Assembly (NCBI GenBank): GCA_977017575.1
Contig: CDRNVI010000024.1
Coordinates: 248,001 to 312,000 of the forward strand
Reading direction: 5' to 3'
DNA from: Paramoeba atlantica
Lineage: Eukaryota > Protista > Discosea
DNA: 64,000 bases
Shown here: one piece after another, positions 1 through 46,530 of the stretch
Position numbering within the stretch: the first letter of the stretch is position 1
Layout of the letters: every line of letters starts with the position of its first letter
The notes under the pieces: generated by a model
Databases searched by the model: none
What the model was told of the DNA's origin: nothing
The model's input: the letters and a program-made list of their open reading frames with translations, nothing else
Program-made: the position numbers and the translations under genes

Positions 1-1842
1 CGACTTACGTTCCATATTCAAGGAGGACGATGTCAGAGGGACTTTTGCGTCTTTCGTGGCTTCCCTCTCAGTTTCACACGATTTACTGCAGCAAGCATCG
101 GAAGTGCACCGGTACCTCCAGTTCAACTCTGGGTCTCGACGAAGAGAAGACACAGGGCGCTTTATCTTATGAATAAAACATTGGCCGACGTTCGGACGCG
201 GATGTTCCGATTTACGTTCACTCGTCGAGGGGGATGATGATAAAGAGCTATTCGCTTCTTTCGCAGTATTAGTCTCAGTCTCGCCCGCCTCCTGAGTAGT
301 TCGATGTTCACGTGAGGTGCAGGTCTGACCCTTCCGACACCTGAAGAGGAGCTTCTCACCCTTTTTAAGGGTTTCTTCCGTTTTTCCCCACATAGTAGTC
401 AAATATTCAACACGTCTCAATCGTTTGTGTACAAAACACAGTTCCCTTTCGCATTCGTTCTTTTTCAATTGAGATTCTGTCTCTTGGCGATGTGCCGATT
501 TAGGTTCGCTCTTCAAAGAGGGTGATGAAGAAAATGAGATATCCACTTCTTTCGTGTTTTTTTTCTCAGTTTCGCACGATTTACTGCAGCAAGCGTCGGA
601 CGTGCACCGGTACCTCCAGTTCAACTCTGGGTCTCGACGAAGAGAAGACACGGGGCGCTTTATCTTATGAATAAAACATTGGCCGACATTCGGACGCGGA
701 TGTTCCGATTTACGTTCACTCGTCAAAGAGGACGATGAAGCAGGGATATTAGCTTCCTTCGCACTATTCGTCTCAGTCTCGCCCGCCTCCCGGGTAGTTC
801 GATGTTCACGTGAGGTGCAGGTCTGACCCTTCCGACACCTGAAGAGGAGTTTCTCACCTTTTTTAAGGGTTTCTTCCGTTTTTCCCCACATAGTGGTCAA
901 ATATTCAACACGTCTCAATCGTTTGTGTACAAAACACAGTTCCCTTTCACATTCGTTCTTTTTCAATTGAGGTTGAGTCTCTATACGACTCGGTGCCTCT
1001 ACACGATTTGGTGTCAGGAGGTTAGTCTCCCTGTCCAGCCCAGTACAGTTGAATCCCTTTCGACACCTCATGTCATATTTCTTCCTTAATGTGCCACTTG
1101 CCTTGTCATCGTGTGGGGTAAAACGAATGAAGCATTCCACGTCCATTTCATCTTGTGATGAGGAATCTTTCGGTGCGGTAGTGCTTTTCTGAATAGCCCC
1201 GTTTTGAGAACATGCTTTGTCGATCTCATAGTGTCCCTTCTGACTATTTTTGCAAACATCGTTCCTTTCTATGCTTTGTGGCCTATTTTGAGGAAAGTCG
1301 GAAGAAGAATTCTCCTCCTTTCGTACTTCTTTACCATTCGGCAGGGATATCTCATCGAAACTTACATCTGTACGCTCTGCACGGTTCCACTCCTTTTCTC
1401 TTTGATTTACTTCTGGGCCAATCACAGGTCCGTTTTTTTCGTTAATTCTATATTTATGTTTCGCCTCTATGTTGGAGATAAACCGTCGAGAGGAGTGAGT
1501 AGGAGAGGGAGGCGCACGGATGTTATGATTCGTGTGATACGCGCAGGGCTGATCTGGACTGCAGCAGTGCACGTTCGCCAGTACCCGATGCAGGGCATGA
1601 TGCATCGAGCCGTGAATAATACACCACTGGCTGATGCCTGTAGTGTAGAGCAGAGGCATATAGCGTGGGGCGATGGAGGTGAAGGGACTGAGTATTTTGG
1701 TTCTCCCGGAGCGGTAGGCATGGGCCGCTTGAGAGTAGCGGGCTCGAGTAGACTCCAGTGTTCTTCTGGAGGTTAGGAAAAGGTTATCCACGATTTGTAG
1801 GCCTCTGCTGGGTGCGCTTCGTGTAACGGAAAAGTTGGACAT
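1..1842 (-). CDS. Repeat protein with CxxH...Cx5C putative zinc fingers; 3'-partial, runs off the window, >=614 aa
   Basis: Manual translation shows no stop from ATG at 1842 (in-frame TAA at 1846-1848 upstream) to position 1. It begins MSNFSVTRSAPSRG and contains WCIIHG..CSPDQPC, 2x LCFVHKRLRRVEYL..FRCRKGQTC and 2x QCFIHKIKRPVSSL..YRCTSDACC. Absent from the ORF track, probably because it has no stop in the window. Confidence 0.8.
   Translation of the reverse strand, partial: MSNFSVTRSAPSRGLQIVDNLFLTSRRTLESTRARYSQAAHAYRSGRTKILSPFTSIAPRYMPLLYTTGISQWCIIHGSMHHALHRVLANVHCCSPDQPCAYHTNHNIRAPPSPTHSSRRFISNIEAKHKYRINEKNGPVIGPEVNQREKEWNRAERTDVSFDEISLPNGKEVRKEENSSSDFPQNRPQSIERNDVCKNSQKGHYEIDKACSQNGAIQKSTTAPKDSSSQDEMDVECFIRFTPHDDKASGTLRKKYDMRCRKGFNCTGLDRETNLLTPNRVEAPSRIETQPQLKKNECERELCFVHKRLRRVEYLTTMWGKTEETLKKGEKLLFRCRKGQTCTSREHRTTREAGETETNSAKEANIPASSSSLTSERKSEHPRPNVGQCFIHKIKRPVSSLRRDPELNWRYRCTSDACCSKSCETEKKNTKEVDISFSSSPSLKSEPKSAHRQETESQLKKNECERELCFVHKRLRRVEYLTTMWGKTEETLKKGEKLLFRCRKGQTCTSREHRTTQEAGETETNTAKEANSSLSSSPSTSERKSEHPRPNVGQCFIHKIKRPVSSLRRDPELNWRYRCTSDACCSKSCETEREATKDAKVPLTSSSLNMERKS
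66..971. repeat. 498-bp (166-codon) near-identical tandem duplication inside the CDS
   Basis: GGTACC at 111 and 609, and CAATTGAG ending 473 and 971, share a constant offset of 498, a multiple of 3. Confidence 0.9.
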
Positions 1843-2208
1843 CGGTTAGAGAAGGAGAACCTATATTATAGTACAGGATTGAGTGTGTGGCAACCTTCAA
1901 CCAATTCGTGAGCTAAAAAGTGATCCACAGAAATACACATTGTACATTGGAGAGAGTTCCTACAGTCTGCCTAAGATAAAATGTAACAGTTGTTTAGTAT
2001 GCAAGGTTTGGTTTATGTATAACGCAGTTGTAGTGTAAAGTTACATCATTCCAAAAGATTTAATGAAAGCTAATCCCGCAATGTGTTGAACTCATACATC
2101 TACTGTAGAAGTAATCCTTTTTATATGTAAATGATCTACATGTGCAAAAGATCTTGTACGGAGGCGCTCGCAGAAGTTTGTACGAAGCGTTCACAACACC
2201 ACATGTGT

Positions 2209-3126
2209 TTATTCCGGTCGCAACAGCTCGCGTAGCCGAATAATCTTATCTCTTTTCTCTGATGGTATTTGCTGTAGCTGTGCGTCCGTTAGTGACTGAA
2301 TCTTTTCCCGTTGTTTTGGGGTCATCCCCTTCAGGAGAGCACGTTCAGCACTATTTGTGTGATCGGGTGGATGAACTAACTTCTCCTTTTTCATAGGAGG
2401 GGGTCCAGTTCCTTTTTCACTTTCTGCCCGTTCTCTCCCCTCACTGGTGTGCATCGTAACAGTTGTACTCAGTACAAGATTCTCTCTTTTATCTCGATTC
2501 TGTTCCCTCTCCCTCCCGGCTGTGTTTCCTACCGAGAGTTGCACAAACGCTTCTTCCGGCCACCCATTTTCCGGAACGCTCGAGGGGTGCATATTTTCCA
2601 TCACACACAGCACAGCATAAGCAAGTGCCGGATTCTCCTGAAATAAGGAAGTCGCTAATTGCGGCTGTTCTCTGGCCAGACTCCTTAGCTGTGCAACGCT
2701 CTCCAGCACTTGCTCTTGTGGAAGTTGTGATAAACATTGGAGAATGGGATCAATTTTATTTGAATTAATTTTATTCGATGGAGATGCAAATCCTTTGAGC
2801 GGTCTACCCCACAGAGAGGGAAGGGAAGCAGAAGAATAAGAAGACGATCGACGGGAGGCTAACGAAGAACGATGTGAGATTTCCACACGAAGAGGCTTGC
2901 CGTTAATCACTCGATTTTGAAGTCCCTGCTGCGCGCAGGCCGCAGAGGTTCCGTCGGTGTACTCACAAAATCCGTACCCGAGCAACTCGCCGTCGGGGTT
3001 CTTTTTAAGGTGAAGCCGTTTGACGGGTCCGAATTCCTGGAAGGCACGGAGAAGTAGAGATTCCGGGGTGGAGGGGGTGAAGTTGTTAAAGAAGAGAGTG
3101 GCAGGGGAGGAAGAGGGTGTGTCCAT
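2209..3126 (-). CDS. CSTF2: Cleavage stimulation factor 64 kDa subunit / Rna15 homologue
   Basis: N-terminal RRM (LGYGFCEY), hinge-like segment (LAREQPQLATSLFQENPALAYA) and C-terminal SLTDAQLQQIPSEKRDKIIRLR typical of CstF64/Rna15. Confidence 0.85.
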   Translation of the reverse strand: MDTPSSSPATLFFNNFTPSTPESLLLRAFQEFGPVKRLHLKKNPDGELLGYGFCEYTDGTSAACAQQGLQNRVINGKPLRVEISHRSSLASRRSSSYSSASLPSLWGRPLKGFASPSNKINSNKIDPILQCLSQLPQEQVLESVAQLRSLAREQPQLATSLFQENPALAYAVLCVMENMHPSSVPENGWPEEAFVQLSVGNTAGREREQNRDKRENLVLSTTVTMHTSEGRERAESEKGTGPPPMKKEKLVHPPDHTNSAERALLKGMTPKQREKIQSLTDAQLQQIPSEKRDKIIRLRELLRPE

Positions 3127-3503
3127 GGGGGAGATTACAGGAAATAAGGTAGGAATGAGACTCAGTGATTTTGTCTTCTAACGAAAATAATTCGGAGGCA
3201 CACAACGAAAAGCCGAAAAGTAAATCATTTTTTCTCCTTACAATGTTTTTCCCTTGTCTTCTGATAAATTTTTCTTTAACGTGGATCTCGTATGATGTAT
3301 CGCCTGTGTTTCTACATAACGTACAAGGAAAGAAAAAGGAATGATTTGGGATAATCAATGTGCATTTTTTTCGTTTTGTTGCATCATTAGTCAGTGGTTC
3401 ATCGAGACTAACTCTTAAGCTGAAAATAGTAACGCACAGCATCATAAAAAGAAAATGCAATAAGGACAGCGCGCACAGGTGCATGTAATCTTCTTTTCAA
3501 CAA

Positions 3504-4523
3504 CTATGAAAGCTCATAGTGGTACCCGAACATCTTTTTCATGCCCTCCCAGAAAACGTTCATCCACCCTTGTGAGATCCTTTCTTTTTCCATGAACGGA
3601 AATTCACTGTGTTCGAATTCCATCACAGTTTTCCCTTCCTCCCCCTCCTTCTCCTTTAACCTAATATGGACCATTGAATCCGGTGAGATCGGGTCCCAGG
3701 ATTTCATACGGAGTTGCATTTTCACATTACACGGGGAGGTTGCCTCTATGATTTTACCGGTCATCGCGCCATCCAGAAGAGACACCTCACCCCCGGGCTG
3801 GGGATCAATACGACAAGGCGCTCGGGTATAGGCACTCACTCTGCGCTGCTCCGTGAGACATTCATAAACCTCTGTCGGGCTACATTGCCACACTAAATGC
3901 ATTTTGAGTGAAGTAGAATTTGGGAGCTTCTCCTCTTTCGATGGTTCGCCTCCTTTAGCTTCACTGGTCGTTGATTTTGCGGCTTCGCACGTTGCACGAT
4001 TCGTCGACGACCGTGTTGGTAGATTTTGCACACCCATTAGATCGTTACGAATGATCTGTTTCAGCATTTCGCGCAGACAAGGGACGGCTTCTTTTCGTAC
4101 AAAGGAAAGGATGTCGTCTTCTGCGTCTCCACCAGAGGATTCCGCTTTCGTGACGCGGATTTCGTGTTCCTCTTCAAAATTTTGTGTGTCGCAATCGACA
4201 ATTTTGAATCTACCCTTCAAGAGTTCATTGTCGTCTGATTTCGATTTTACACTCCAGCTGAGTTCAAAATTCATTTCAAAGAAACAAATTGGCTTTCCTT
4301 TCCGGCTCGCGACCGTAACCTCACCGTTAAATGCGGTTAACTCATGAGCCTGTACCACATAGCTATCCGACGCACAGAGCTCCCTATCTTTGAACTGTTG
4401 AGCGAGGTGTTCCTTCCAGTGCATTGTCTTGTCACGTTGCTCCCAGTGCCACTCATTTACGTTGGCGCCATCCGTTCGGTCAGCAACAATCCAGCGAGGG
4501 TCTGCGTCACCCAGGCGTGCCAT
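3504..4523 (-). CDS. AHSA1: Activator of Hsp90 ATPase (Aha1)
   Basis: Start reset to MARLGDADPRWIV. Has ANVNEWHWEQRD, SRKGKPICFF and a C-terminal AHSA1 domain (SPTEVYECLT...GW..FW). Confidence 0.92.
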   Translation of the reverse strand: MARLGDADPRWIVADRTDGANVNEWHWEQRDKTMHWKEHLAQQFKDRELCASDSYVVQAHELTAFNGEVTVASRKGKPICFFEMNFELSWSVKSKSDDNELLKGRFKIVDCDTQNFEEEHEIRVTKAESSGGDAEDDILSFVRKEAVPCLREMLKQIIRNDLMGVQNLPTRSSTNRATCEAAKSTTSEAKGGEPSKEEKLPNSTSLKMHLVWQCSPTEVYECLTEQRRVSAYTRAPCRIDPQPGGEVSLLDGAMTGKIIEATSPCNVKMQLRMKSWDPISPDSMVHIRLKEKEGEEGKTVMEFEHSEFPFMEKERISQGWMNVFWEGMKKMFGYHYELS

Positions 4524-4803
4524 CGAAGGAACTAAGAAAACAGAAATATGCACTTGATCAGAAAATTGGTACACCGTGTATTAAAGCCGTAGTTTTACTT
4601 GAGAAGAAAAATTGCTATTGGTGAACGTAAAACTGGTAAAATGAAAAACAAAAAAATAGTCTATACCAAAGCGAAAAGCGTTGACCCGGATCTTACTCAT
4701 TTTTTAGCTTTAGTTTACATGATTTTGTAGCACTCTATCTGTACTTAATATTAGCTTCACTCCATTGTGCGTACAAAAAGAGTGCAACCCCGGTTTATTC
4801 CCT

Positions 4804-6021
4804 TTACTCCCCCTCCTGTTCTTCCACTCTAGAAGTCTGACACTCCACCCCTGGCCGGCACCTCCACCCGGTCTCCCTTTTTTCCAAATTATTCTCACTG
4901 CGCTCCTTCCCATGGACCACACAGACCTGTCGCACCGTAATCCGTGGATTCGAGACCTTACATTCCTGAGGAGCAACACAGTGCCACGTGTTACTCACCT
5001 CCTCATACCGTAAATAGTCCTTTCGTCGTTGTTTCTTGTGGGTCGTACACAGCTCGGTGTCTTCTGCTTTGGTGAGGTCACTGGAGTGAGTCTTCCCCTC
5101 CCCGTTCCCCTCCCCCCCTCCTCCCCCCACCCCCGGGAGTCGACAGGTGAGCCCCTGCCGGCACACATAGGTGTTGGAATCCTCATCGAAGTTCAAGTGA
5201 CTCACCCATCGTGATTTCCCGTGCACGGCACAGGTTTGCTTCACTTTGGCTAACCCGATCGGGTCGTGCTCTCTTTTGTTTTCCGCATTTCTTTGTTGCT
5301 GAAACACCAAACAGGCGTTTTCCGGTTTACAGTTCCATTGCTGCTTTTCGTTGTTAAACTCCAAGTAGTGTTCGTGTCGGATGCGGTCGTGGAGCGCACA
5401 GAGCTGCTGGGGGATGCGGGAGAGGCGTTTGTGGGGGGTATCGACCAGACAGGCGTTCCCGGGTTTACATTTCCATGTGTTGGATACGGCACAGTGGGTC
5501 ATTTTGTCCGCAATGCGCTCTTTGCCGTGGAGCGCGCAGACACGGCGGGAGATCGGGGGGGTGGGGTGGGGCATATTTTTTTGTGTATTTGATGATGAGG
5601 ATGAGGATGCTGATTCTGTTATCGGAGATTCGGCGTCAGATTCGGCTAAATTTGCATTTTCGTGTTCTTCTTCCTCTTCTTCTCCATTTTCGTATTCCTG
5701 TTCTTCATTTTCATCTTCTTGTGGCTGAGCAGCAGTGCGGGATGTGGCATAAAAAGAATTTTGGGTGTGGAGAAGAGGAAAGGGGGTTGTGGTGAAATGA
5801 GCTCTGCGAGTAGCATTTGAAAAGAGAAGAAAGGATGAAATGGGGTAAATGTTTCGGAGGGCATGAGGTGGAGAAATGGTCGGAGACTGTGTCGTAAGGA
5901 GAGCATGGTCTCGGACCAAAGCATTTACACTCAGGGAGCTATGTTTTGGACAATGAACTCGTTTTGTGCAACGGGGGAGCCACGCTCTTGACGGAGGTGT
6001 GAAACGGCTGAGTAAAACCAT
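4804..6021 (-). CDS. Protein with five CxxH...Cx5C putative zinc fingers, an acidic linker and a presequence-like N-terminus
   Basis: First ATG at 6021 (the track start is TTG). Five motifs, e.g. CALHGKERIADKM..WKCKPGNAC and CVVHGKERSENNL..WRCRPGVEC. Confidence 0.8.
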   Translation of the reverse strand: MVLLSRFTPPSRAWLPRCTKRVHCPKHSSLSVNALVRDHALLTTQSPTISPPHALRNIYPISSFLLFSNATRRAHFTTTPFPLLHTQNSFYATSRTAAQPQEDENEEQEYENGEEEEEEHENANLAESDAESPITESASSSSSSNTQKNMPHPTPPISRRVCALHGKERIADKMTHCAVSNTWKCKPGNACLVDTPHKRLSRIPQQLCALHDRIRHEHYLEFNNEKQQWNCKPENACLVFQQQRNAENKREHDPIGLAKVKQTCAVHGKSRWVSHLNFDEDSNTYVCRQGLTCRLPGVGGGGGEGNGEGKTHSSDLTKAEDTELCTTHKKQRRKDYLRYEEVSNTWHCVAPQECKVSNPRITVRQVCVVHGKERSENNLEKRETGWRCRPGVECQTSRVEEQEGE

Positions 6022-6167
6022 GGGAAGAGTGAAAAAAAAGGATGTCAATGATTTTAGAACGTCGTATAATAACGGGTGTTTACAATTTATGCTTGGCTTA
6101 GTATAATCATGTTCAATAATTCGATTGAAATTACGAACATCACGACTACACTAAGAGTTCAAGATCC

Positions 6168-6497
6168 CTAGGACGGGTCTCTTACTTCCTCGTCGGTTGT
6201 GGAAGGTACCACTCGGTAATTTTTTCGACGAAACACAAGAGCGTTGCCCGTGTATGTTGTTCTCCATCGTGTAGGGGGAATGGCCGCTGGCCGTATTTCT
6301 GTTTCTATATCAGGTAAAGAGGTGAGAAAATTACACTCATCATTATATTCTACATCGGTGGGATCATAGCTTCGATCGAGACGGTATCGAAAATTCGTAC
6401 CCTTCTGGCGGATTGTAGATTCAAACACCGGAGACGGATGAAAAGCACTGAGCAGAGTGGATGCACCGAGTGGACGGGTGTGAACAACTCTCCTCAT
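6168..6497 (-). CDS. Small hypothetical protein, possibly mitochondrial
   Basis: ATG at 6497, same strand as neighbours, Arg-rich N-terminus (MRRVVHTRPLG). No family recognised. Confidence 0.5.
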   Translation of the reverse strand: MRRVVHTRPLGASTLLSAFHPSPVFESTIRQKGTNFRYRLDRSYDPTDVEYNDECNFLTSLPDIETEIRPAAIPPTRWRTTYTGNALVFRRKNYRVVPSTTDEEVRDPS

Positions 6498-6720
6498 TGA
6501 CAGTATCACGTAAGAATGTGTATCTTAAAAACGAAATTAAAATGTTTTTTAAAGTAGGTAAACATATCGAAGCAAGAGCCCTCCTTTTAGAGACGACACC
6601 ACGTTCGCTAATCTTACACTTTTTCTTTTTCAACAAAAATACCAGTATGTACCGAGCATTCCGCGAAAAGTGCTCCAACTTCCCGCCAACTGAAACCCCC
6701 CCACCTGCCTCCCCACCCCC

Positions 6721-8211
6721 TCATTTCTTCTTCGTCCTCGCATCCAGCACCCTCATCCTCAACCTCTCCACACTACTCTCCATCCCCGAGGTGTCCCCAA
6801 ACACCGCCAGCGTCGGGGTGGCCTCAATCATCTCCCCGCACACGCCCCGAATCCCCCCGAGCGTCACGGCGCGAACCCTCTCCGCCGCCTCCTCGAACCC
6901 CACCACCGAGGAGAACAGCAGCAGCCCGCGGCCGCACTCCTCCAGCTGCCCCAGCACCGTGTCGTTCACCAGGAACATCTGACTCAGCAGCAGCTGTTTC
7001 GCCATCTCCACGTGGTACTCACTGATGCGCTGGCCGACGGTGGCGAGTTGCTCCACCAGCACTCTTAGCAGGTGTTGGTTAAACGCGTGGGGGGCACTGC
7101 CGTAGAGCCCGAAGAGACCGGCGTCGGTGTAGGCCGCGGTGACGCACTCCACCCCCGCGACCCAGGGCTCCCGGGCGACCACCTCGCGGTAGAGCTTCGT
7201 CAGCATCCCCTTCCCCGGGCCCCCGCTGCTGAAGCTCTGGCCCCCCCCGAGCAGGCACTGGGCGACGGCCAGGGTGAAGTAGCGGGGGTGGGCGTAGGTG
7301 GGGGCGGGGTAGAAGAGACCGAGGTGGGTGTGGCTCTTCTCGGCGAACTTGTCCACGGACTCCGGGGGGAGGGTGTTGTGGGCCATGGCAATGCCCCCGT
7401 GGTAGGGGGAGGGGGGGGGTGCGGCCGTTTTCGTGGCGTTCTCGCCTTTTTGAGCGGCCAAGGGAGAGAAAGACGCGGAGGTATCCCCGACCTCTCCCGC
7501 CTTCTCCCCCTTCCCCGTGGGCTCACCAAACACAAAACACTTCTCCACATCCGCTACAAACGCGTTGTGGTCCGAGACCCCGGACCCGACCACGGTCATC
7601 CCCCCCGGGCTGACCCACTCCTTCGCAAAGTCGGCCAAAACGTTGGGGGTGATTTTCTCTAAGTCGCTGATTTCAAACAGCGCATTTCGCCCCAGCAGCT
7701 TCCCCCCAAACGCGGCCTGGTGCAACAGTTCAAAACACTGCCCGGTGGGGTCACGGGCGCGTGCGGGGATGGTTTGCGCGACGGACTGCTTGACATGTTC
7801 CAGAACCTCCGGGTCTTGGAAACTGGGAAAGACCAGGGCGCTGGAGAGGAGCTCAATCGCCTGGGGGGTGTAGTACCCCGGGCACTGCACGACGTAACTC
7901 ACACACTCGCGGTGGTTGTTGATGGCGAGCGAGTTCCCCATAAAGCTGAGGTCCTCCGCGAGGTCGCCGGAGGGTATTTTGCGGTTCGAGTGGAAGAAGT
8001 ATTTGTCGAAGAGGGCGCTGCACCCGGTGGTGGGGTCGCGCTCGCAGCGCACCCCCATTTTGAGGAAGACCCCGACGGCGCTGAGGGCGCGGGTGTCGTC
8101 GTAGGAGAGCACGCGGAGGCCGTTGGGGAGGGTGGTGAGGGATTTGGGGAAGTGGGGAGGGGGGCGGGGAGGGGGTAGAGCACGGCGTAAAAAGGTGGAA
8201 CGAAGGGACAT
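6721..8211 (-). CDS. PMPCA: Mitochondrial processing peptidase alpha subunit (M16 family)
   Basis: Glycine-rich loop LGGGQSFSSGGPGKGMLTKLY, N-terminal TTLPNGLRV, no HxxEH zinc motif (non-catalytic subunit). Confidence 0.93.
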   Translation of the reverse strand: MSLRSTFLRRALPPPRPPPHFPKSLTTLPNGLRVLSYDDTRALSAVGVFLKMGVRCERDPTTGCSALFDKYFFHSNRKIPSGDLAEDLSFMGNSLAINNHRECVSYVVQCPGYYTPQAIELLSSALVFPSFQDPEVLEHVKQSVAQTIPARARDPTGQCFELLHQAAFGGKLLGRNALFEISDLEKITPNVLADFAKEWVSPGGMTVVGSGVSDHNAFVADVEKCFVFGEPTGKGEKAGEVGDTSASFSPLAAQKGENATKTAAPPPSPYHGGIAMAHNTLPPESVDKFAEKSHTHLGLFYPAPTYAHPRYFTLAVAQCLLGGGQSFSSGGPGKGMLTKLYREVVAREPWVAGVECVTAAYTDAGLFGLYGSAPHAFNQHLLRVLVEQLATVGQRISEYHVEMAKQLLLSQMFLVNDTVLGQLEECGRGLLLFSSVVGFEEAAERVRAVTLGGIRGVCGEMIEATPTLAVFGDTSGMESSVERLRMRVLDARTKKK

Positions 8212-8654
8212 GGAGGGGGGAACGAAGGGGGAAATGTGATTTTTGGGGTGCTTTGGGGGGTAGAAAAGGGAAGAAGGGTGGGATAGGTGTTGTTGAAAGA
8301 AAACGAAGAGGACGGTTACACGGATTGATTAGAAAATGACACGCTCAACATGTAGGATACATGTATAAAAGGTTTTGTGGAAGACTAAACCCCTCGACCT
8401 CGGAATGTAAAAAACAAATCGGCCCCATAACTCCTATTGGGTCATGAACTGCACCTTTCTAAAGCACCCTTGTGTTAAAACACACCCTGTCCTGTCTCTT
8501 CATCCAACCACACTCTATGTGGCAACAAAAAACGTTTTCAAAATTGACAACTACCGTTATCGCACAGCAATGGACACCCAATTTGACAATGCACGCATTA
8601 AACGTAAAAAATTAAAATAACTTTCTTTTTATCCTCTCTACTCGATCCCCCCTT

Positions 8655-9344
8655 TCACTCCATCCTCCCTTCTCCTATCCCACTGGAAACCCTACACTGG
8701 GACGCGGGGTGACACCTCCAGCACTGCTCCGAGGCGAGATAGACCAAGTTCGCCTCACTCCGTACCTTACGGTGCAGTGCACACATAAACGACCGGCTCG
8801 GACCAGGAGGAGGAGGCGGAGGGTGCGCATGAGGTCCACGAGAACCCGAGGACCCATACCCCCCATAGGAGCTCGAATACGAGCCGGAGTACGAGCCCCC
8901 TGTACCCCCATAGGTACGCGGCCGGTACCCCCCCGTAGACTTACACACACTCTCCGGGCGGCAGCGCCAGGTCCCGGCATAGTGGTCTTGTACCAAATTG
9001 CACACACTACGCTCTTTTCCGTGCAGGGAACACCTGAAGACCCCGTCCATGGTGTAATCTTTTGCCTTCTTTTCCGTTTCATGACGACTTTCGTTATTCT
9101 TTTCATCGTTCTCCTCCTCATCGCCCTCTCGCCCGGTACTCGCGTGTCTCTTTCTTTGCTGTTCCCCCGGTGGGGTTTTACACAGGTGCTCCTCGGCACA
9201 GCGATACCCCCCGAGGTGGTGATCGAACCGAAGCACCTCGGGGTTACGGACCTTGTCGTGAATCATGCAACGCTCTCGACGAAGGGAGGGGGGAGGGGAG
9301 ACGGGGGACCAGGAGGTGTGGGGAGCGTCCGGGTGAGAGGACAT
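8655..9344 (-). CDS. Protein with three CxxH...Cx5C putative zinc fingers and a Ser/Gly/Tyr low-complexity segment
   Basis: CMIHDKVR..YRCAEEHLC, CSLHGKER..WRCRPESVC and CALHRKVR..WRCHPASQC, plus YGGTGGSYSGSYSSSYGGYGS. Confidence 0.8.
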   Translation of the reverse strand: MSSHPDAPHTSWSPVSPPPSLRRERCMIHDKVRNPEVLRFDHHLGGYRCAEEHLCKTPPGEQQRKRHASTGREGDEEENDEKNNESRHETEKKAKDYTMDGVFRCSLHGKERSVCNLVQDHYAGTWRCRPESVCKSTGGYRPRTYGGTGGSYSGSYSSSYGGYGSSGSRGPHAHPPPPPPGPSRSFMCALHRKVRSEANLVYLASEQCWRCHPASQCRVSSGIGEGRME

Positions 9345-9483: not shown

Positions 9484-10836
9484 TAAACCCCCCGTCACGA
9501 TAAGTGACCATAGGCTAACTTTTGGTATATAAAGCCGTTTTAGCTAATTCTTGTTGCATTTTGCAGATCTCAGGCCCTAATATCTTGGGGTCACACACTT
9601 GGTACAAATTCTGAACACCTACACCTAGGGGGGGTCGCCTACCATTTTTTCACTTTTTCGCCATTTTTCTCAATACAAGCTTTCAGTCGCTTATTGAAGC
9701 TAAGAACCATATGATCCATAACCTCAGTAGGAATCTTGCTCCATGCATTCTTTACGCAATGGATAAGTGATTCGGTATTAGAAGGCAATTGCTCATCAAC
9801 AAGTTCTTACATCATAGACCACACATTCTCTATGGGATTAAGGTCGGGTGAATTGTGGGGCCACGTTTCGATGAAGCTTATTCCTGAATTCAAAAAATAC
9901 TGCTTAGTGGCCTTCGCTGTGTGAGCAGTGGCCCCATCTTGTTGAAAAATACGGTTAGAAGGTAGTGTTACACTTTTGAGCGTTTCTACGTAGGTTTTAC
10001 TATTTATATTCGAAACAGGGAGGATGCGCAAGCATTTCCACCCGACCCCAATCGCTCCCCAAACGTGAAACTTTTGGTGCCCAGCGTACTTTTTGTCTTG
10101 TGGATGGTTTTCCATTTGGACGTACCCACTGATTTCGCCTTGAGTCATTGGTGTCAAATATCTTTTCATCACTAAATATTACTTCTCCAGAGTGGCGCTT
10201 CCCTCTTAGCCATTTTTTACAAAACTTTACCCTTTTAATCATTTGTTTTTCAAATAAGCCTTGAGAAAGAGAACGCGCTTGGTAGTTCCATGCCAATTCT
10301 TTAAGATCCCTTTGCACAGTTCTTCTCCCCATTTTTATTCCTTTCCTGGCAAGTACAGCTACAATACGTCTGGGACTATTGTTCTTTGGTACCCCCCTTG
10401 CATCTGTATCCTGCAAGGCATTCTCAATTTCACATCTTCGTTTTTTCACCTCCGGACTTTCAGATTTCGGGGTGGAAGCCTCATAAGTCACAATTGGTTC
10501 TGCCAAGTAAGATCTCACAATTCGGCGACTAACATTAAATTCTTTTGCTAGTTTTCGCTTAGAAACACCGTCTTCGTGACGCAAACGAAGTATAAGCTTC
10601 CCTGCTTGCGTTAAACCCCCTTTAGGTAGGGAGAGTTTTCTTCTTCTCATAAAAAAACTGTTTTTCAAGAAATCGATATTTTCAATTTTTTTAAAAATTT
10701 AGTTTCTCTAGGACAGAAAATAATAGCGGGAAACTGCAGAACGCGAAATTCTACACGAAACTATGGTATGTATACCCCCATACCCCACTCAACACAGATT
10801 TTAGCCTATGGTCACTTATTCGTGACGGGGGGTTTA
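9484..10836 (-). mobile_element. Tc1/mariner-IS630 element with ~36-bp TIRs and a disrupted transposase
   Basis: TIR TAAACCCCCCGTCACGA(A)TAAGTGACCATAGGCTAA at 9484-9518 and inverted at 10801-10836. Transposase from ATG 10650 has FSDEK, QQDGATAH and SPDLNPIENVW, a 1-bp insertion near 10069 and a premature TAA at 9807-9809. Confidence 0.9.
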
Positions 10837-11176
10837 TTATAGGAACTGTCCCTCGTTTGTACTGAAGCAGGGGAAGCGTTTCACCCCCTTCACCCCTTCC
10901 CGACTCACTCCCCTGGAGCAAGAGTGTTTCCACCTCTCAGCTTTTCTTCTACAATGATTACCTTTCCGAGCAGGCCATGCTTCACGATGGCCTCTCTTGA
11001 GAACCACTCGACGTGTCCGTTGCTACTGGCATTCCCGGCTCTCTGCAGCGACCTGGCGGTCACCCGACTCTGTCGCAGCTCTCTCCACCCGTTTACCACC
11101 AACAAGCCCAAACCCTCTCGTATTCAATCTCCTCGCAAACAAAAGTGCATGGTGAAACCCTCCCCTCTTCACCCTT

Positions 11177-12727
11177 TCACCCCTCCCTCCCCCCTCCCCT
11201 CCCCAGCAACGCCCCCAGTGCCCCCAAATACCCATTATGCCGCGCGAAACACGCCCGTACCCCACTCCCCTCCCCCCAGTACGCCATCCCCTGACTCAGC
11301 CCCTGCCACACCACCACGTTGTTATGCACGAAACCCCCGGTGAAGTACACATTATCGATTTTCTCCAACCGACTGTGTAAATACGCCAGCTGCGTAATGT
11401 TCCCACACACCATCGTGAGCAGACTACGGACGTAGTCCGAGCGTGTGGGGGAGGAACCGGGGGAAGAGCCCGCTACCCCCTCCCCCATCTCCCCCCTCCA
11501 CCTGCTCCCCACAGCAATCTTACCAAAGCTCGAGGCTAAGGTATGGGGTTTTAAATTCCCGGGAAGACTCCAGGGGGATTCATCATGGTTCCTCTTCTTA
11601 TCCTCATGGTTCCTCTTCTTATCCTCATGGTTCCTATTCTTATCCCCATGATTCCTCTTCTTATCCCCATAATTCCTCTTCTTATCCTCAGGGTTCTTCT
11701 TCCCATCCCCACGAGGCCGCTCCCCCCAGCCGTAGATATCCCCGACGGCCAGGTCCACCCTCGCGGGCTCCGCGGGGGCCCGGTCCCCGTCGTTCTGCAG
11801 GTCGAGCTGGTCCCAGGTGCGGGCCCCGGTGAGCAGCTGGCACAGCCCCCAGAACGTGCCGCCCCCGATCGCGGACCCGGAGAGGCGGGCGAAGTCCCCG
11901 TGGGCCGCGGAGGCGCATTTGAGAATGGAGACCCCGGAGCCGATGTGGATGAGGAGGTAGGGCCAGGGGGAGGACGGGGAGGATGAAGAGTACGCTCTAC
12001 CCGAAGAAGAAGAGTACGCTCTACCCGAAGAAGAAGAAGAAGAAGAGTATGCTCTACTCGAAGGAGAGTACGCTCTACTCGAAGAAGAAGAGTACTCCCT
12101 ACTCGAGGAAGAAGAGGAAGAAGAGGAAGCGTTCAAACTTTGAAGGGAAAAGGTTTTGGAGAAGGGGTTTGAATCCACAGGGGACGCCGAGGGGGAAGCC
12201 GGGGGGGAATCTTTAGGGGGGTGATGGGATGTACGCTGTGTTGGGGGGGGTACGGTGTAGTGAAAGATCTCCCCGGGAAAGGTTTTGAGTAAAAAATTAA
12301 GACCGCGGAGGATCGAGTGCATTTCGGGGTGGAGCTGGAGTGTGATGGAGAGGGTGTTGTGGATGAGGGGGGCGTATTTGTAGGCCCCGCCTCCCGTGCC
12401 GGGGATGTGGGAGACGTCGTGGAATTTTTCTTGTACATTGGAGTTCTTGATAAAGGAGATAAACGCGGGCACTTTTTCTACAGGAAATTTAATAAACCGC
12501 AGATAGCCCGTAAAATTTTCGCGTGTGGTAGGAAAGTTCACCAGTTCGGCCGGCACAAAGAAATGAAGTTTCCGCCCAAGTTCAAAGCCAACAGTGGAGA
12601 CATTTTCGGTGGTGCAGTACTCAGGTAGTTTCGGTGCGTTGGGTGGCTGAAAGAATACCATCTTACAACATGAACCACCGATATCGACAGCGCACGGAGC
12701 GCAAAACTTTTCGGAAGAAGTCTCCAC
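11177..12727 (-). CDS. PANK: Type II pantothenate kinase (Fumble family) with low-complexity insertions; non-AUG start
   Basis: Motifs AVDIGGS, GTGGGAYKY, IGSGVSIL, IGGGTFWGL, VGDIYG, ASSFGK, FTGGF, GYLGALGA. Codon 12727-12725 is GTG. Confidence 0.92.
   Translation of the reverse strand: METSSEKFCAPCAVDIGGSCCKMVFFQPPNAPKLPEYCTTENVSTVGFELGRKLHFFVPAELVNFPTTRENFTGYLRFIKFPVEKVPAFISFIKNSNVQEKFHDVSHIPGTGGGAYKYAPLIHNTLSITLQLHPEMHSILRGLNFLLKTFPGEIFHYTVPPPTQRTSHHPPKDSPPASPSASPVDSNPFSKTFSLQSLNASSSSSSSSSREYSSSSSRAYSPSSRAYSSSSSSSGRAYSSSSGRAYSSSSPSSPWPYLLIHIGSGVSILKCASAAHGDFARLSGSAIGGGTFWGLCQLLTGARTWDQLDLQNDGDRAPAEPARVDLAVGDIYGWGERPRGDGKKNPEDKKRNYGDKKRNHGDKNRNHEDKKRNHEDKKRNHDESPWSLPGNLKPHTLASSFGKIAVGSRWRGEMGEGVAGSSPGSSPTRSDYVRSLLTMVCGNITQLAYLHSRLEKIDNVYFTGGFVHNNVVVWQGLSQGMAYWGEGSGVRACFARHNGYLGALGALLGRGGGREG
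11585..11690. repeat. 21-bp coding tandem repeat, about 5 copies, encoding (E/G)DKKRNH
   Basis: Recurring CCTCTTCTTATCC(T/C)CAT unit on the plus strand. Confidence 0.85.
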
Positions 12728-19104: not shown

Positions 19105-19206
19105 GCCCCAGTTCCCTTCTCGGGAACCGGGGCCTTCAAGCGAACTTAGAGTTCGAAGCTTCTCATACCAACAAGGTACAGAAACTGTATCTTTATCGTT
19201 AAAGTT
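19105..19206 (-). ncRNA. SL: Spliced leader RNA gene, copy 1 (exon 19206-19169; 3' end approximate)
   Basis: AACTTTAACGATAAAGATACAGTTTCTGTACCTTGTTG|GTATGAGAAGCT has the AACT cap start, the ACAGTTTCTGTAC core and the TTG/GTATGAGAAGCT donor of kinetoplastid SL RNAs, followed by two stem-loops. Confidence 0.92.
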
Positions 19207-19401: not shown

Positions 19402-19503
19402 GCCCCAGTTCCCTTCTCGGGAACCGGGGCCTTCAAGCGAACTTAGAGTTCGAAGCTTCTCATACCAACAAGGTACAGAAACTGTATCTTTATCGTTAAA
19501 GTT
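19402..19503 (-). ncRNA. SL: Spliced leader RNA gene, copy 2 (exon 19503-19466)
   Basis: Same sequence as copy 1, offset 297. Confidence 0.92.
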
Positions 19504-19892: not shown

Positions 19893-20011
19893 GGGTACGA
19901 CCATACTACGGTGAAAACACCACATCCCGTTCGCTTTGTGAAGTTAAGCACCGTCAGGCTCAGTTAGTACTGAGGTGAGCGATCGCTCGGGAACCCTGAG
20001 TGTTGTACTCT
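19893..20011 (+). rRNA. 5S: 5S ribosomal RNA
   Basis: GGGTACGACCATACT..GAAGTTAAGC..GTTAGTACTG..GTGTTGTACTC, about 119 nt, followed by a T6 terminator at 20011-20016. The 5' end is euglenozoan-type. Confidence 0.97.
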
Positions 20012-45042: not shown

Positions 45043-46530
45043 TTACGCAAAGAAGAGGTCGATCTCGCGCAGCATGATTTGAAGCTCATAGGCAAACGTG
45101 GACAGCGGTCCATCCTCTCCAATCATCGGCGGAAGGTTTCCAATCCACCGAAACGGGTTCACCAGACTGAGCTTCACCCGCTCCTCAAAGCCATCCCCAA
45201 ACCTCTCCTCCTTCACCCGTATCGCGGCCACAAACTGCGCATACATCCGGCTCGTACAAACATACGATATGAAATTCGGATCCTCCATGGCCTGCCGCTT
45301 CATCTCCGCCGCACTCATACCAAAAATCTTACTCGCGTGCTCATCAAACACCGTAACCCAGTTTTGACTTGTCCCATCACTAATCATCAGCGCCACCAAA
45401 TACCGTGGCTCCGAGACACTGTACGTCTTGTCACACTTCTCACACCGCAGTGCCGTCTCCATCCCCACCGGAATCAGCTTCTTGTGACACGTCGGGCACG
45501 CGTCGTACATTAAGCTATCCGCCTTAATGTGCGTAATCGTGGCCCGCACGTGGATGTAGTCCGGTTTCTCCCCCCTCCCCAGCCCCAGCCGGGGGATCTC
45601 CTCGAGCGTGTTGCGGTACTGCACCGGCCCACGCGAGCTCGAGGTGCCGTCGGAGAGCGACAGGTTGGGGACCTGGATGACACCGTCACAGCTGCGGAAC
45701 CACTGCCGGAGGGTCTGGATGTGGGACTCCGGGGGGGAGCGCTCGAGGGTGGAGCTGTGGCCGAGGGAGAGGGTGAGCTCCCCGTTGAACTCCGAGAGCC
45801 GGGCGGACTTGATCCCGATGACCGCACCGACGGGGAGATCCCAGTTGGTGGCGAGAATGTCCCAGACGACGACGTCGATTTGAGCGGTCTGGTCCGCCAG
45901 GGAGATGTTGCGTTTGATCAGGGATTGGCCGATTTTGGTGGTAATGGTTTGGGGGTTTTGAATCGCGGTGATGAGACCGATGACGTCAAGGGTGCTGCCT
46001 TTTTCTTTGCCTTTCAAGGAGCCGATGGGGACGAAGTTGAACACTTTGAGGGGGAGAACCTTGTTGAGTGCATCTGACGCACGGACGGAGGTGATTTCAG
46101 TGTCTTTGTCAAAGGAGAGCTCGTACTCACAATTGACTGCGGAAAATTTTTTGTTTGCTGTCTTAATTTGACCTTTCGAAAAGGTGTACACATTGCCCTC
46201 CACCAGGGTTTCGTAAAACTTGTCCACACCCTCTTGAAACACTGTCGCACGTATCGGCCCACTTTGGTCGACTAGGGTCATGGAGAAGAGCTTTCCCTGG
46301 CTGCGGGCATTGGACCACGTTCGGACAGGGGACTTATCTGTGACACGAGCTTTGATGACCCATCGGCCGCCAATGTAGGGAGAAAGTGATTCAATGGGTT
46401 GTATGTTCATGCTGTCTCCACCTGACGCGGTGGGATTCACACCAGCCTTTTTATTGGGGCAGTTGATGGGAGTGTGACCTGTTTGGCGACAGAACATACA
46501 CGTACCCGCGGATGAGCCCTGGTACTGCAT
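45043..46530 (-). CDS. RPA1: Replication protein A large subunit lacking RPA70N, with an N-terminal CCHC zinc knuckle
   Basis: IQPIESLSPY..WVIKARVTDKSPVRTWSNARSQGKLFSM, DBD-B, and DBD-C with CPTC..CEKC. N-terminal CMFCRQTGHTPINC. Confidence 0.93.
   Translation of the reverse strand: MQYQGSSAGTCMFCRQTGHTPINCPNKKAGVNPTASGGDSMNIQPIESLSPYIGGRWVIKARVTDKSPVRTWSNARSQGKLFSMTLVDQSGPIRATVFQEGVDKFYETLVEGNVYTFSKGQIKTANKKFSAVNCEYELSFDKDTEITSVRASDALNKVLPLKVFNFVPIGSLKGKEKGSTLDVIGLITAIQNPQTITTKIGQSLIKRNISLADQTAQIDVVVWDILATNWDLPVGAVIGIKSARLSEFNGELTLSLGHSSTLERSPPESHIQTLRQWFRSCDGVIQVPNLSLSDGTSSSRGPVQYRNTLEEIPRLGLGRGEKPDYIHVRATITHIKADSLMYDACPTCHKKLIPVGMETALRCEKCDKTYSVSEPRYLVALMISDGTSQNWVTVFDEHASKIFGMSAAEMKRQAMEDPNFISYVCTSRMYAQFVAAIRVKEERFGDGFEERVKLSLVNPFRWIGNLPPMIGEDGPLSTFAYELQIMLREIDLFFA

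Follow-up and report, generated by a model that had tools for sequence, protein, structure and literature searches.

A repeated C-x2-H...C-x5-C module in three clustered protist genes as a probable new zinc-finger family with a predicted role in RNA binding

Three kinds of small metal-binding module come closest to the one described here: the RanBP2/ZRANB2-type ribbon (PF00641), the CCCH finger (PF00642 and kin), and the TFIIB-type ribbon (PF08271). RanBP2 ribbons are arrayed in tandem along flexible linkers and are found in RNA-binding proteins, CCCH fingers are small RNA-binding modules with the ligand spacing C-x8-C-x5-C-x3-H, and the human TFIIB ribbon carries its ligands as C-x2-H...C-x2-C. 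A window of 64 kb (the whole stretch of DNA analyzed, taken from contig CDRNVI010000024.1 of the Paramoeba atlantica assembly GCA_977017575.1) contains within its first 9.4 kb three genes, g1, g2, and g3, that encode arrays of a module resembling each of these kinds but belonging to none of them. The ligands of this module run in the order Cys, His, Cys, Cys, and it is referred to here as the CHCC module. The reading preferred here, with a probability of about 0.6, is that g1 to g3 are real genes of an undescribed repeat-protein family whose module binds zinc and RNA and is arranged as beads on a string.

The window was scanned in six-frame translation, and coordinates below are window positions. 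In the translated open reading frames (ORFs), a regular expression for the strict motif, C-x2-H-x3-R-x4-L-loop-[WYF]-x-C-x5-C, matched 11 times (four in g1, four in g2, and three in g3). Two looser copies, g2 module 1 with M for L and g1 module 1 without R and L, bring the totals to 5, 5, and 3, or 13 in all; M at the L position is usual within the family. The three genes and 13 copies of the preliminary description were thus recovered, including the first copy (WCIIHG), which it had described as fitting only in part. No further match was found in the six-frame translation of the 64 kb outside g1 to g3. The strict motif was absent from 5000 composition-preserving shuffles of each protein, and the loose motif appeared in the same shuffles about 0.05 times per protein on average. 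The genes and their modules are as follows.

1..1842, minus strand: g1, running past the window start, with 614 of its 659 codons inside the window
1543..1623, minus strand: g1 module 1, degenerate (CIIHG...), with C-x2-H and C-x5-C kept and R and L lacking
817..936, minus strand: g1 module 2, with a long loop of 17 residues
586..678, minus strand: g1 module 3, a regular-expression match
319..438, minus strand: g1 module 4, a duplicate of g1 module 2
88..180, minus strand: g1 module 5, a duplicate of g1 module 3
4804..6021, minus strand: g2, 405 amino acids (aa), with five CHCC modules
5449..5538, minus strand: g2 module 1, with M at the L position
5311..5400, minus strand: g2 module 2, a regular-expression match
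5143..5232, minus strand: g2 module 3, a regular-expression match
4960..5049, minus strand: g2 module 4, a regular-expression match
4840..4923, minus strand: g2 module 5, a regular-expression match
8655..9344, minus strand: g3, 229 aa, with three CHCC modules
9180..9269, minus strand: g3 module 1, a regular-expression match
8943..9032, minus strand: g3 module 2, the sequence used for the AlphaFold2 module model
8694..8783, minus strand: g3 module 3, a regular-expression match

The full g1 ORF (L020:793-2772:-) encodes 659 aa and contains a sixth, good module beyond the window start, as well as one decayed copy without the His. Inside the window, g1 has a presequence-like N terminus followed by one degenerate and four good modules, and a 498-nucleotide (nt) tandem duplication with 92% identity corresponds to a two-module unit. 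In g2, an acid-poor segment (residues 1 to 95) is followed by an acidic tract (residues 100 to 130) and then by the five modules. The N terminus of g3 is not presequence-like, and its linkers comprise one that is acidic and one that is S/Y/G rich and then Pro rich. Both compositional features noted in the preliminary description are therefore present: N termini poor in acidic residues (g1 and g2) and a tract rich in S, Y, and G (g3).

The share of cysteines that fall within modules is 11 of 11 for g3, 16 of 18 for g2, and 18 of 27 for g1. All 21 modules compared, from seven genes of this genome, have the C, H, R, C, and C without exception, with identity to the first module of only 21 to 42%; modules of g2 and g3 are 26 to 42% identical to each other and keep the same five residues. 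A profile of these 21 modules, scored against 1.84 billion representative proteins (clusters at 50% identity), matched 401 proteins at E values of ≤1e-3, 218 at ≤1e-10, and 25 at ≤1e-30, nearly all of them with 2 to 12 modules. The best 150 of the 401 matching proteins contained 582 modules, a set found by a pattern that fixes Cys and His and whose count therefore says nothing on the conservation of those residues. Of the 582, 574 had Arg at H+4, 536 had Leu or Met at the hydrophobic position, and 428 had W, Y, or F at the aromatic position; the C-x5-C spacing was kept in 537, and the loop was 6 to 8 residues long in 495. The family-wide consensus, about 30 residues long, is C-S-[VIL]-H-G-K-x-R-[ST]-x3-[LM]-x5-G-x-[WYF]-x-C-x-P-G-x-E-C-K, with G in 95% two residues before the aromatic, K in 84% at H+2, and K or R in 67% after the last Cys. 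A canonical module thus has three conserved basic residues and one aromatic residue.

No Pfam model matched the module in g1 to g3 (hmmscan, E ≤10), in four paralogs (E ≤0.01), or in 151 relatives (E ≤0.001). The RanBP2 ribbon is likewise about 30 residues long and all beta and has a conserved aromatic at position -2 relative to a ligand Cys, but its ligands, W-x-C-x2-C-x3-N-x6-C-x2-C, are four Cys in two x2 knuckles, in contrast to the C-x2-H...C-x5-C and invariant Arg of the CHCC module; PF00641 had no match in g1 to g3, and separate RanBP2 fingers were found in only 2 of the 151 relatives. CCCH fingers share with the module the set of three Cys and one His, the C-x5-C element, a small size, and occurrence in the same proteins. 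The His is second in the CHCC module and last in the CCCH finger, the CHCC module is longer and beta rich, its HGKxR signature is absent from CCCH fingers, and no Pfam CCCH model scores on the modules. The spacing C-x7-9-C-x4-5-C-x3-H was not found in g1 to g3 by regular expression, and the CCCH matches in the relatives all lie outside the CHCC modules. With the TFIIB ribbon the module has in common the order C, H, C, C, the C-x2-H first knuckle, and a beta-hairpin architecture, whereas its second pair is C-x5-C in place of C-x2-C and it is arrayed rather than present as a single copy in transcription factors; hmmscan of g1 to g3 gave no match to the TFIIB ribbon, and Foldseek and VIA-align did not demonstrate a fold similarity to it. 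The Pfam family zf-CHCC (PF10276, NDUFS6 type), which is mitochondrial, has the name and ligand composition in common with the module but is an unrelated sequence family, found once per protein in a subunit of complex I, and it had no match in g1 to g3, the four paralogs, or the 151 relatives at the same cutoffs. The CCHC knuckle (PF00098, C-x2-C-x4-H-x4-C) was not found in the g1 to g3 modules; a separate, true CCHC knuckle is present in the Apiculatamorpha protein P0021 (E 6.7e-11). The preliminary description had been unable to place the spacing in any known finger family, and the CCCH, CCHC, and RanBP2 comparisons bear this out.

Taxon labels, taken from EukProt, MMETSP, and NCBI names, were available for about 8 of the 401 matches. 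The labeled relatives are from the prokinetoplastids Apiculatamorpha spiralis and Papus ankaliazontas and from the dinoflagellates Polykrikos kofoidii, Crypthecodinium cohnii, Polarella glacialis, and Pelagodinium bei; many relatives come from transcriptomes, and those without a taxon label are MMETSP, JGI, Logan, and ENA sequences. The genome of the window belongs to neither Apiculatamorpha spiralis nor Papus ankaliazontas, with identities of only 30 to 37%. Six transcript contigs of relatives had no dinoflagellate spliced leader at their 5' ends. A word search with g2 returned no homolog, and one with a 60-protein alignment returned only a member of that alignment; this search requires shared 5-mers, so that neither result is proof of absence, and a search with the canonical module sequence did recover relatives. 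An ESM Atlas search with g3 gave no usable match. Among the labeled matches, the module is so far confined to kinetoplastids and dinoflagellates, two lineages with unusual RNA biology: both depend on spliced-leader trans-splicing, regulate genes posttranscriptionally, and edit or process their organellar RNA heavily. The suggestion that the module is specific to kinetoplastids was not upheld, as the four dinoflagellates carry it.

AlphaFold2 modeled the 38-residue g3 module 2 (from a 21-module alignment) with a mean predicted local distance difference test score (pLDDT) of 87.9 and four short strands. In the model, the first Cys ends strand 1, K-x-R lies within strand 2, L or M precedes strand 3, and aromatic-x-Cys ends strand 4. 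A model of g2 (from a 60-protein alignment) contained five modules with a pLDDT of 93 to 97 and a strand pattern identical to that of the single module, and its linkers and residues 1 to 155 scored below 55, as disordered. The module is accordingly predicted to be a discrete, self-folding, four-stranded mini-domain of the zinc-ribbon or knuckle kind, and the folded unit first proposed from the conserved residues gains from both the invariance of C, H, R, C, and C and the confident models. A PDB sequence search with the module profile gave only noise (granulin, E 0.13; P2X receptors, about 1). Neither the module model nor the g2 model gave a Foldseek match at E ≤1e-3 (a LIM domain came closest, at E 0.43), and an exhaustive VIA-align comparison with 48,161 chains found nothing significant (best Z, 3.2). 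Profile and model searches thus yielded neither a Pfam family of known function nor a significant fold. The weak best neighbors were mostly LIM, CHFR Cys-rich, C1, PHD, and RIM/rabphilin fingers, together with eL24-type ribosomal proteins; they are compatible with a zinc knuckle or ribbon fold and prove nothing. The two-zinc LIM, PHD, and C1 domains themselves were rejected as candidates, as they need eight ligands and the module has four.

Each module would bind one zinc through its Cys, His, Cys, and Cys. With three Cys and one His per module, the number of Cys is odd, and metal binding fits better than disulfides. Domains that accompany the module among the 151 relatives are zf-CCCH (about 18 proteins), RanBP2 (2), CCHC (2), KH (1), and dsrm (double-stranded RNA-binding domain; 1), with AIP3, HVO_2753_ZBP, and zf-ChsH2 in one relative each; an additional relative combines a pair of KH domains with three CHCC modules. 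In dinoflagellate proteins, including one from Polarella, CCCH fingers often alternate one to one with CHCC modules. Linkers in the family are RS rich, G/Y/S rich, or G/M rich. As far as sequence allows, the basic and aromatic residues, linkers, and partner domains together read as the signature of RNA-binding proteins, and it is this signature that favors a zinc-dependent, modular role in binding single-stranded RNA. The module thus probably binds RNA, and the partner domains lend support to the nucleic acid-binding role that the preliminary description had proposed. In the mechanism envisaged, modules would be strung along disordered, low-complexity linkers, the conserved Lys, Arg, C-terminal Lys, and aromatic residue would form a surface contacting single-stranded nucleic acid, most likely RNA, and the array may read or coat RNA module by module, as the partner domains suggest.

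In the 45.7-Mb assembly, the module profile had 40 matches, which occur in pairs because contigs C11, C44, and C7 mirror C24 (the contig of the window), C66, and C65. The C11 counterparts of g1 to g3 (L001, L004, and L019) are 98.9 to 99.7% identical to the window genes (positions 1 to 9344), with no ligand substituted; C11 represents the other allele or haplotype for this segment of C24. The assembly is therefore partly diploid, and family counts are to be halved. With 8 synonymous and 14 nonsynonymous differences over g1 to g3, the allelic ratio of nonsynonymous to synonymous substitution (dN/dS) is unusable. Each haplotype has eight family genes, six of which lie within 81 kb of C24. Those other than g1 to g3 are as follows.

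L031, 9 kb before the window: a gene with three modules
L032: a gene with four modules
L033: a gene with a CCHC knuckle (E 0.0045, below the cutoff) 20 residues before its single module
L034:1742-3703:- (G000:C66), minus strand: a gene with three modules and then some 300 residues of SPPRGW/RG/RS-type repeats, an SR- or RGG-like tail
L049:1-1677:- (G000:C24), minus strand, about 35 kb before the window: a gene whose module loops contain very long inserts

In one module of the L049 gene, some 250 residues rich in Thr and Pro separate the C-x2-H half from the C-x5-C half, and the loop can evidently take insertions of extreme length.

Six genes, all on the minus strand, form a single same-strand run across the first 9.4 kb of the window. 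In addition to g1 and g2, which take their places as indicated, the run comprises the following.

9344-8655, minus strand: g3, the first gene of the run, read 5' to 3'
8211-6721, minus strand: mitochondrial processing peptidase alpha (MPP-alpha; Peptidase_M16 and M16_C), between g3 and g2
4574-3504, minus strand: AHA1, after g2
3126-2209, minus strand: a CstF64-like protein with RRM and hinge domains, between AHA1 and g1

On an ENA contig from a related organism (L047), AHA1 is followed by a P-type ATPase, then by MPP-alpha and a short ORF, and then by P0025, a CHCC protein with four modules, ahead of a CstF64-like gene. The L047 MPP-alpha is 57% identical to that of the window, compared with only 28% identity between P0025 and g2, concentrated at motif positions. 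P0025 and g2 share a long acid-poor N terminus, then an acidic tract, then the finger array, and P0025 is taken as the syntenic g2 ortholog; judged from this pair, the linkers of CHCC proteins appear to evolve fast while the motif is held. The 20-kb stretch of L047 has one CHCC gene versus three in the window, and g1 and g3 are therefore considered later local additions. Local gene duplication, together with the tandem module duplication inside g1, would account for growth of the family in this genome. The proposed lineage expansion thus stands as a local one, with eight paralogs per haplotype and six of them within 81 kb, and falls as one limited to kinetoplastids, given the many dinoflagellate members. 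On a 1.39-Mb ENA contig of another protist (L048), two genes of the family (7302-7994:+ and 10001-11155:+) lie 2 kb apart, with an RNB exonuclease, importin-alpha, an MRP-L46-like gene, and a PIF1 helicase as neighbors, all on the same strand.

Several members of the family have N termini that would suit import into mitochondria. In g2, acidic residues begin at position 38, and 7 of the first 40 residues are K or R; position 38 is likewise where they begin in the neighboring and certainly mitochondrial MPP-alpha. Of 27 long ORFs in the window, only 5 have no acidic residue before position 30. P0025 has no acidic residue before position 74, and the Apiculatamorpha and Papus proteins, like the L031 and L032 paralogs, have N termini similar to that of g2. 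A mitochondrial role for g2 and the L031 and L032 genes, and less clearly for g1, is plausible on N-terminal composition, and these four may act on mitochondrial RNA, which is the weakest step of the proposal. No organellar character is apparent in g3, L033, L034, or the dinoflagellate proteins; g3 and most relatives look nucleo-cytoplasmic (CCCH, RS, and KH partners), and g3 and the RG/RS-type paralog (L034) probably act in the nucleus or cytoplasm. The organellar RNA processing raised in the preliminary description can thus be retained for g1, g2, and two paralogs, with the presequence-like feature conserved in the g2 ortholog, and not for g3 or most relatives, which lack it. A broader proposal, that the CHCC module is a dedicated RNA-recognition unit of kinetoplastids and dinoflagellates, acquired by ancient inheritance or transfer, and that the presequence-bearing g1, g2, L031, and L032 proteins are previously unseen mitochondrial RNA-processing or editing factors, is speculative and is advanced only tentatively.

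Several observations weigh against the RNA-binding, zinc-dependent reading or parts of it. About 85% of the relatives have no recognized partner domain, and domain association is indirect. CCHC knuckles and zinc ribbons also bind single-stranded DNA (ssDNA) or proteins. The g1 N terminus has acidic residues at positions 19 and 30, all fold matches of the models were insignificant, so that "zinc-ribbon-like" is a description only, and the distribution rests on labels for about 8 of 401 matches. Binding to DNA, such as the ssDNA of the kinetoplast or nucleus, would have precedents in chromatin fingers and in UMSBP, a CCHC-knuckle protein that acts at minicircle origins. The presequence-like N termini of g1, g2, and two other paralogs would be in keeping with it, as would the CCHC knuckles fused to modules in L033 and P0021, and the basic conserved surface suits either nucleic acid; most partners, in contrast, are RNA specific (CCCH, KH, dsrm, RanBP2, and RS and GY/RGG-like tracts), and no DNA-binding domain co-occurs with the module, which makes DNA an unlikely main target. 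Direct contact with nucleic acid would not be needed if the modules bound proteins, ubiquitin, or peptides, as LIM, NZF, and PHD domains do, and the arrays scaffolded ribonucleoprotein granules. LIM, PHD, C1, and RIM/rabphilin fingers are indeed among the weak structural neighbors, and low-complexity linkers are typical of granule scaffolds, but the structural matches are all statistically insignificant and the conserved K, R, K, and aromatic pattern points with the partner domains to nucleic acid; we regard such a role as quite unlikely.

The identity of the metal and the reality of the genes can be weighed in the same way. Three Cys and one His are also the ligand set of CDGSH (mitoNEET) 2Fe-2S domains, and some paralogs may be mitochondrial, so that an iron-sulfur cluster in place of zinc deserves mention. 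No CDGSH or Fe-S Pfam model rose above noise (LRV_FeS, E 0.53; Fer2_3, E 0.021, far below the cutoff), and the spacing and predicted beta-knuckle fold resemble those of zinc fingers. Disulfides are opposed by the odd number of Cys, the lack of signal peptides, and the intracellular partner domains, and a cluster or disulfide-bonded module is accordingly very improbable. The 498-nt duplication in g1, recent at 92% identity, and the failure of the word search to find a g2 homolog might suggest that the ORFs are nonfunctional and the motif a by-product of repeated DNA. Yet the g2 and g3 modules have kept five invariant residues at 26 to 42% identity, another genome has a syntenic ortholog, the relatives number 401, with many from transcriptomes, and the allelic copies are intact with their ligands unsubstituted, which leaves this explanation with a negligible chance. 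A zinc- and RNA-binding module in real genes remains the preferred reading.

Elsewhere in the window, a relic of a Tc1/mariner-type transposase (9807-10668, minus strand) lies between g3 and a pantothenate kinase gene and is split over two overlapping frames, one with HTH_Tnp_Tc3_2-like N-terminal matches and the other with a DDE-like C-terminal part. The pantothenate kinase-like ORF (11177-12727, minus strand) has low-complexity repeat inserts that are Ser rich or of the KRNHxDKK type. A 495-aa ORF (45046-46530, minus strand) opens with a motif resembling a CCHC knuckle (C-x2-C-x4-H-x4-C), located in the first 25 residues. A spliced-leader (SL)-like 19-mer occurs twice (19169-19187 and 19466-19484, minus strand), with 2 mismatches to the 3' half of the kinetoplastid SL and zero occurrences expected by chance. 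A 5S rRNA gene (19893-20011, plus strand; Rfam, 99 bits) adjoins these copies, which suggests a linked SL-5S unit, and the SL-like copies and the intron-free same-strand layout fit a kinetoplastid origin; the source of g1 to g3 is read here as a trypanosome relative that branched early.

No description of the module was found in the literature on CHCC in trypanosomes or dinoflagellates and on prokinetoplastid zinc fingers, and it is probably a new zinc-finger family that has neither a Pfam model nor a solved structure. Databases leave its carriers unnamed or name them by the accompanying CCCH finger alone; NCBI and UniRef give the Polarella member as "unnamed protein product" or "C3H1-type domain-containing protein." With at least 401 clusters at 50% identity and hundreds of modules, defining the module would annotate hundreds of protist proteins. 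It is a candidate modular RNA reader for two groups in which gene expression is almost wholly posttranscriptional, and in kinetoplastids it points to a handful of candidate new nucleic acid-binding proteins of the mitochondrion.

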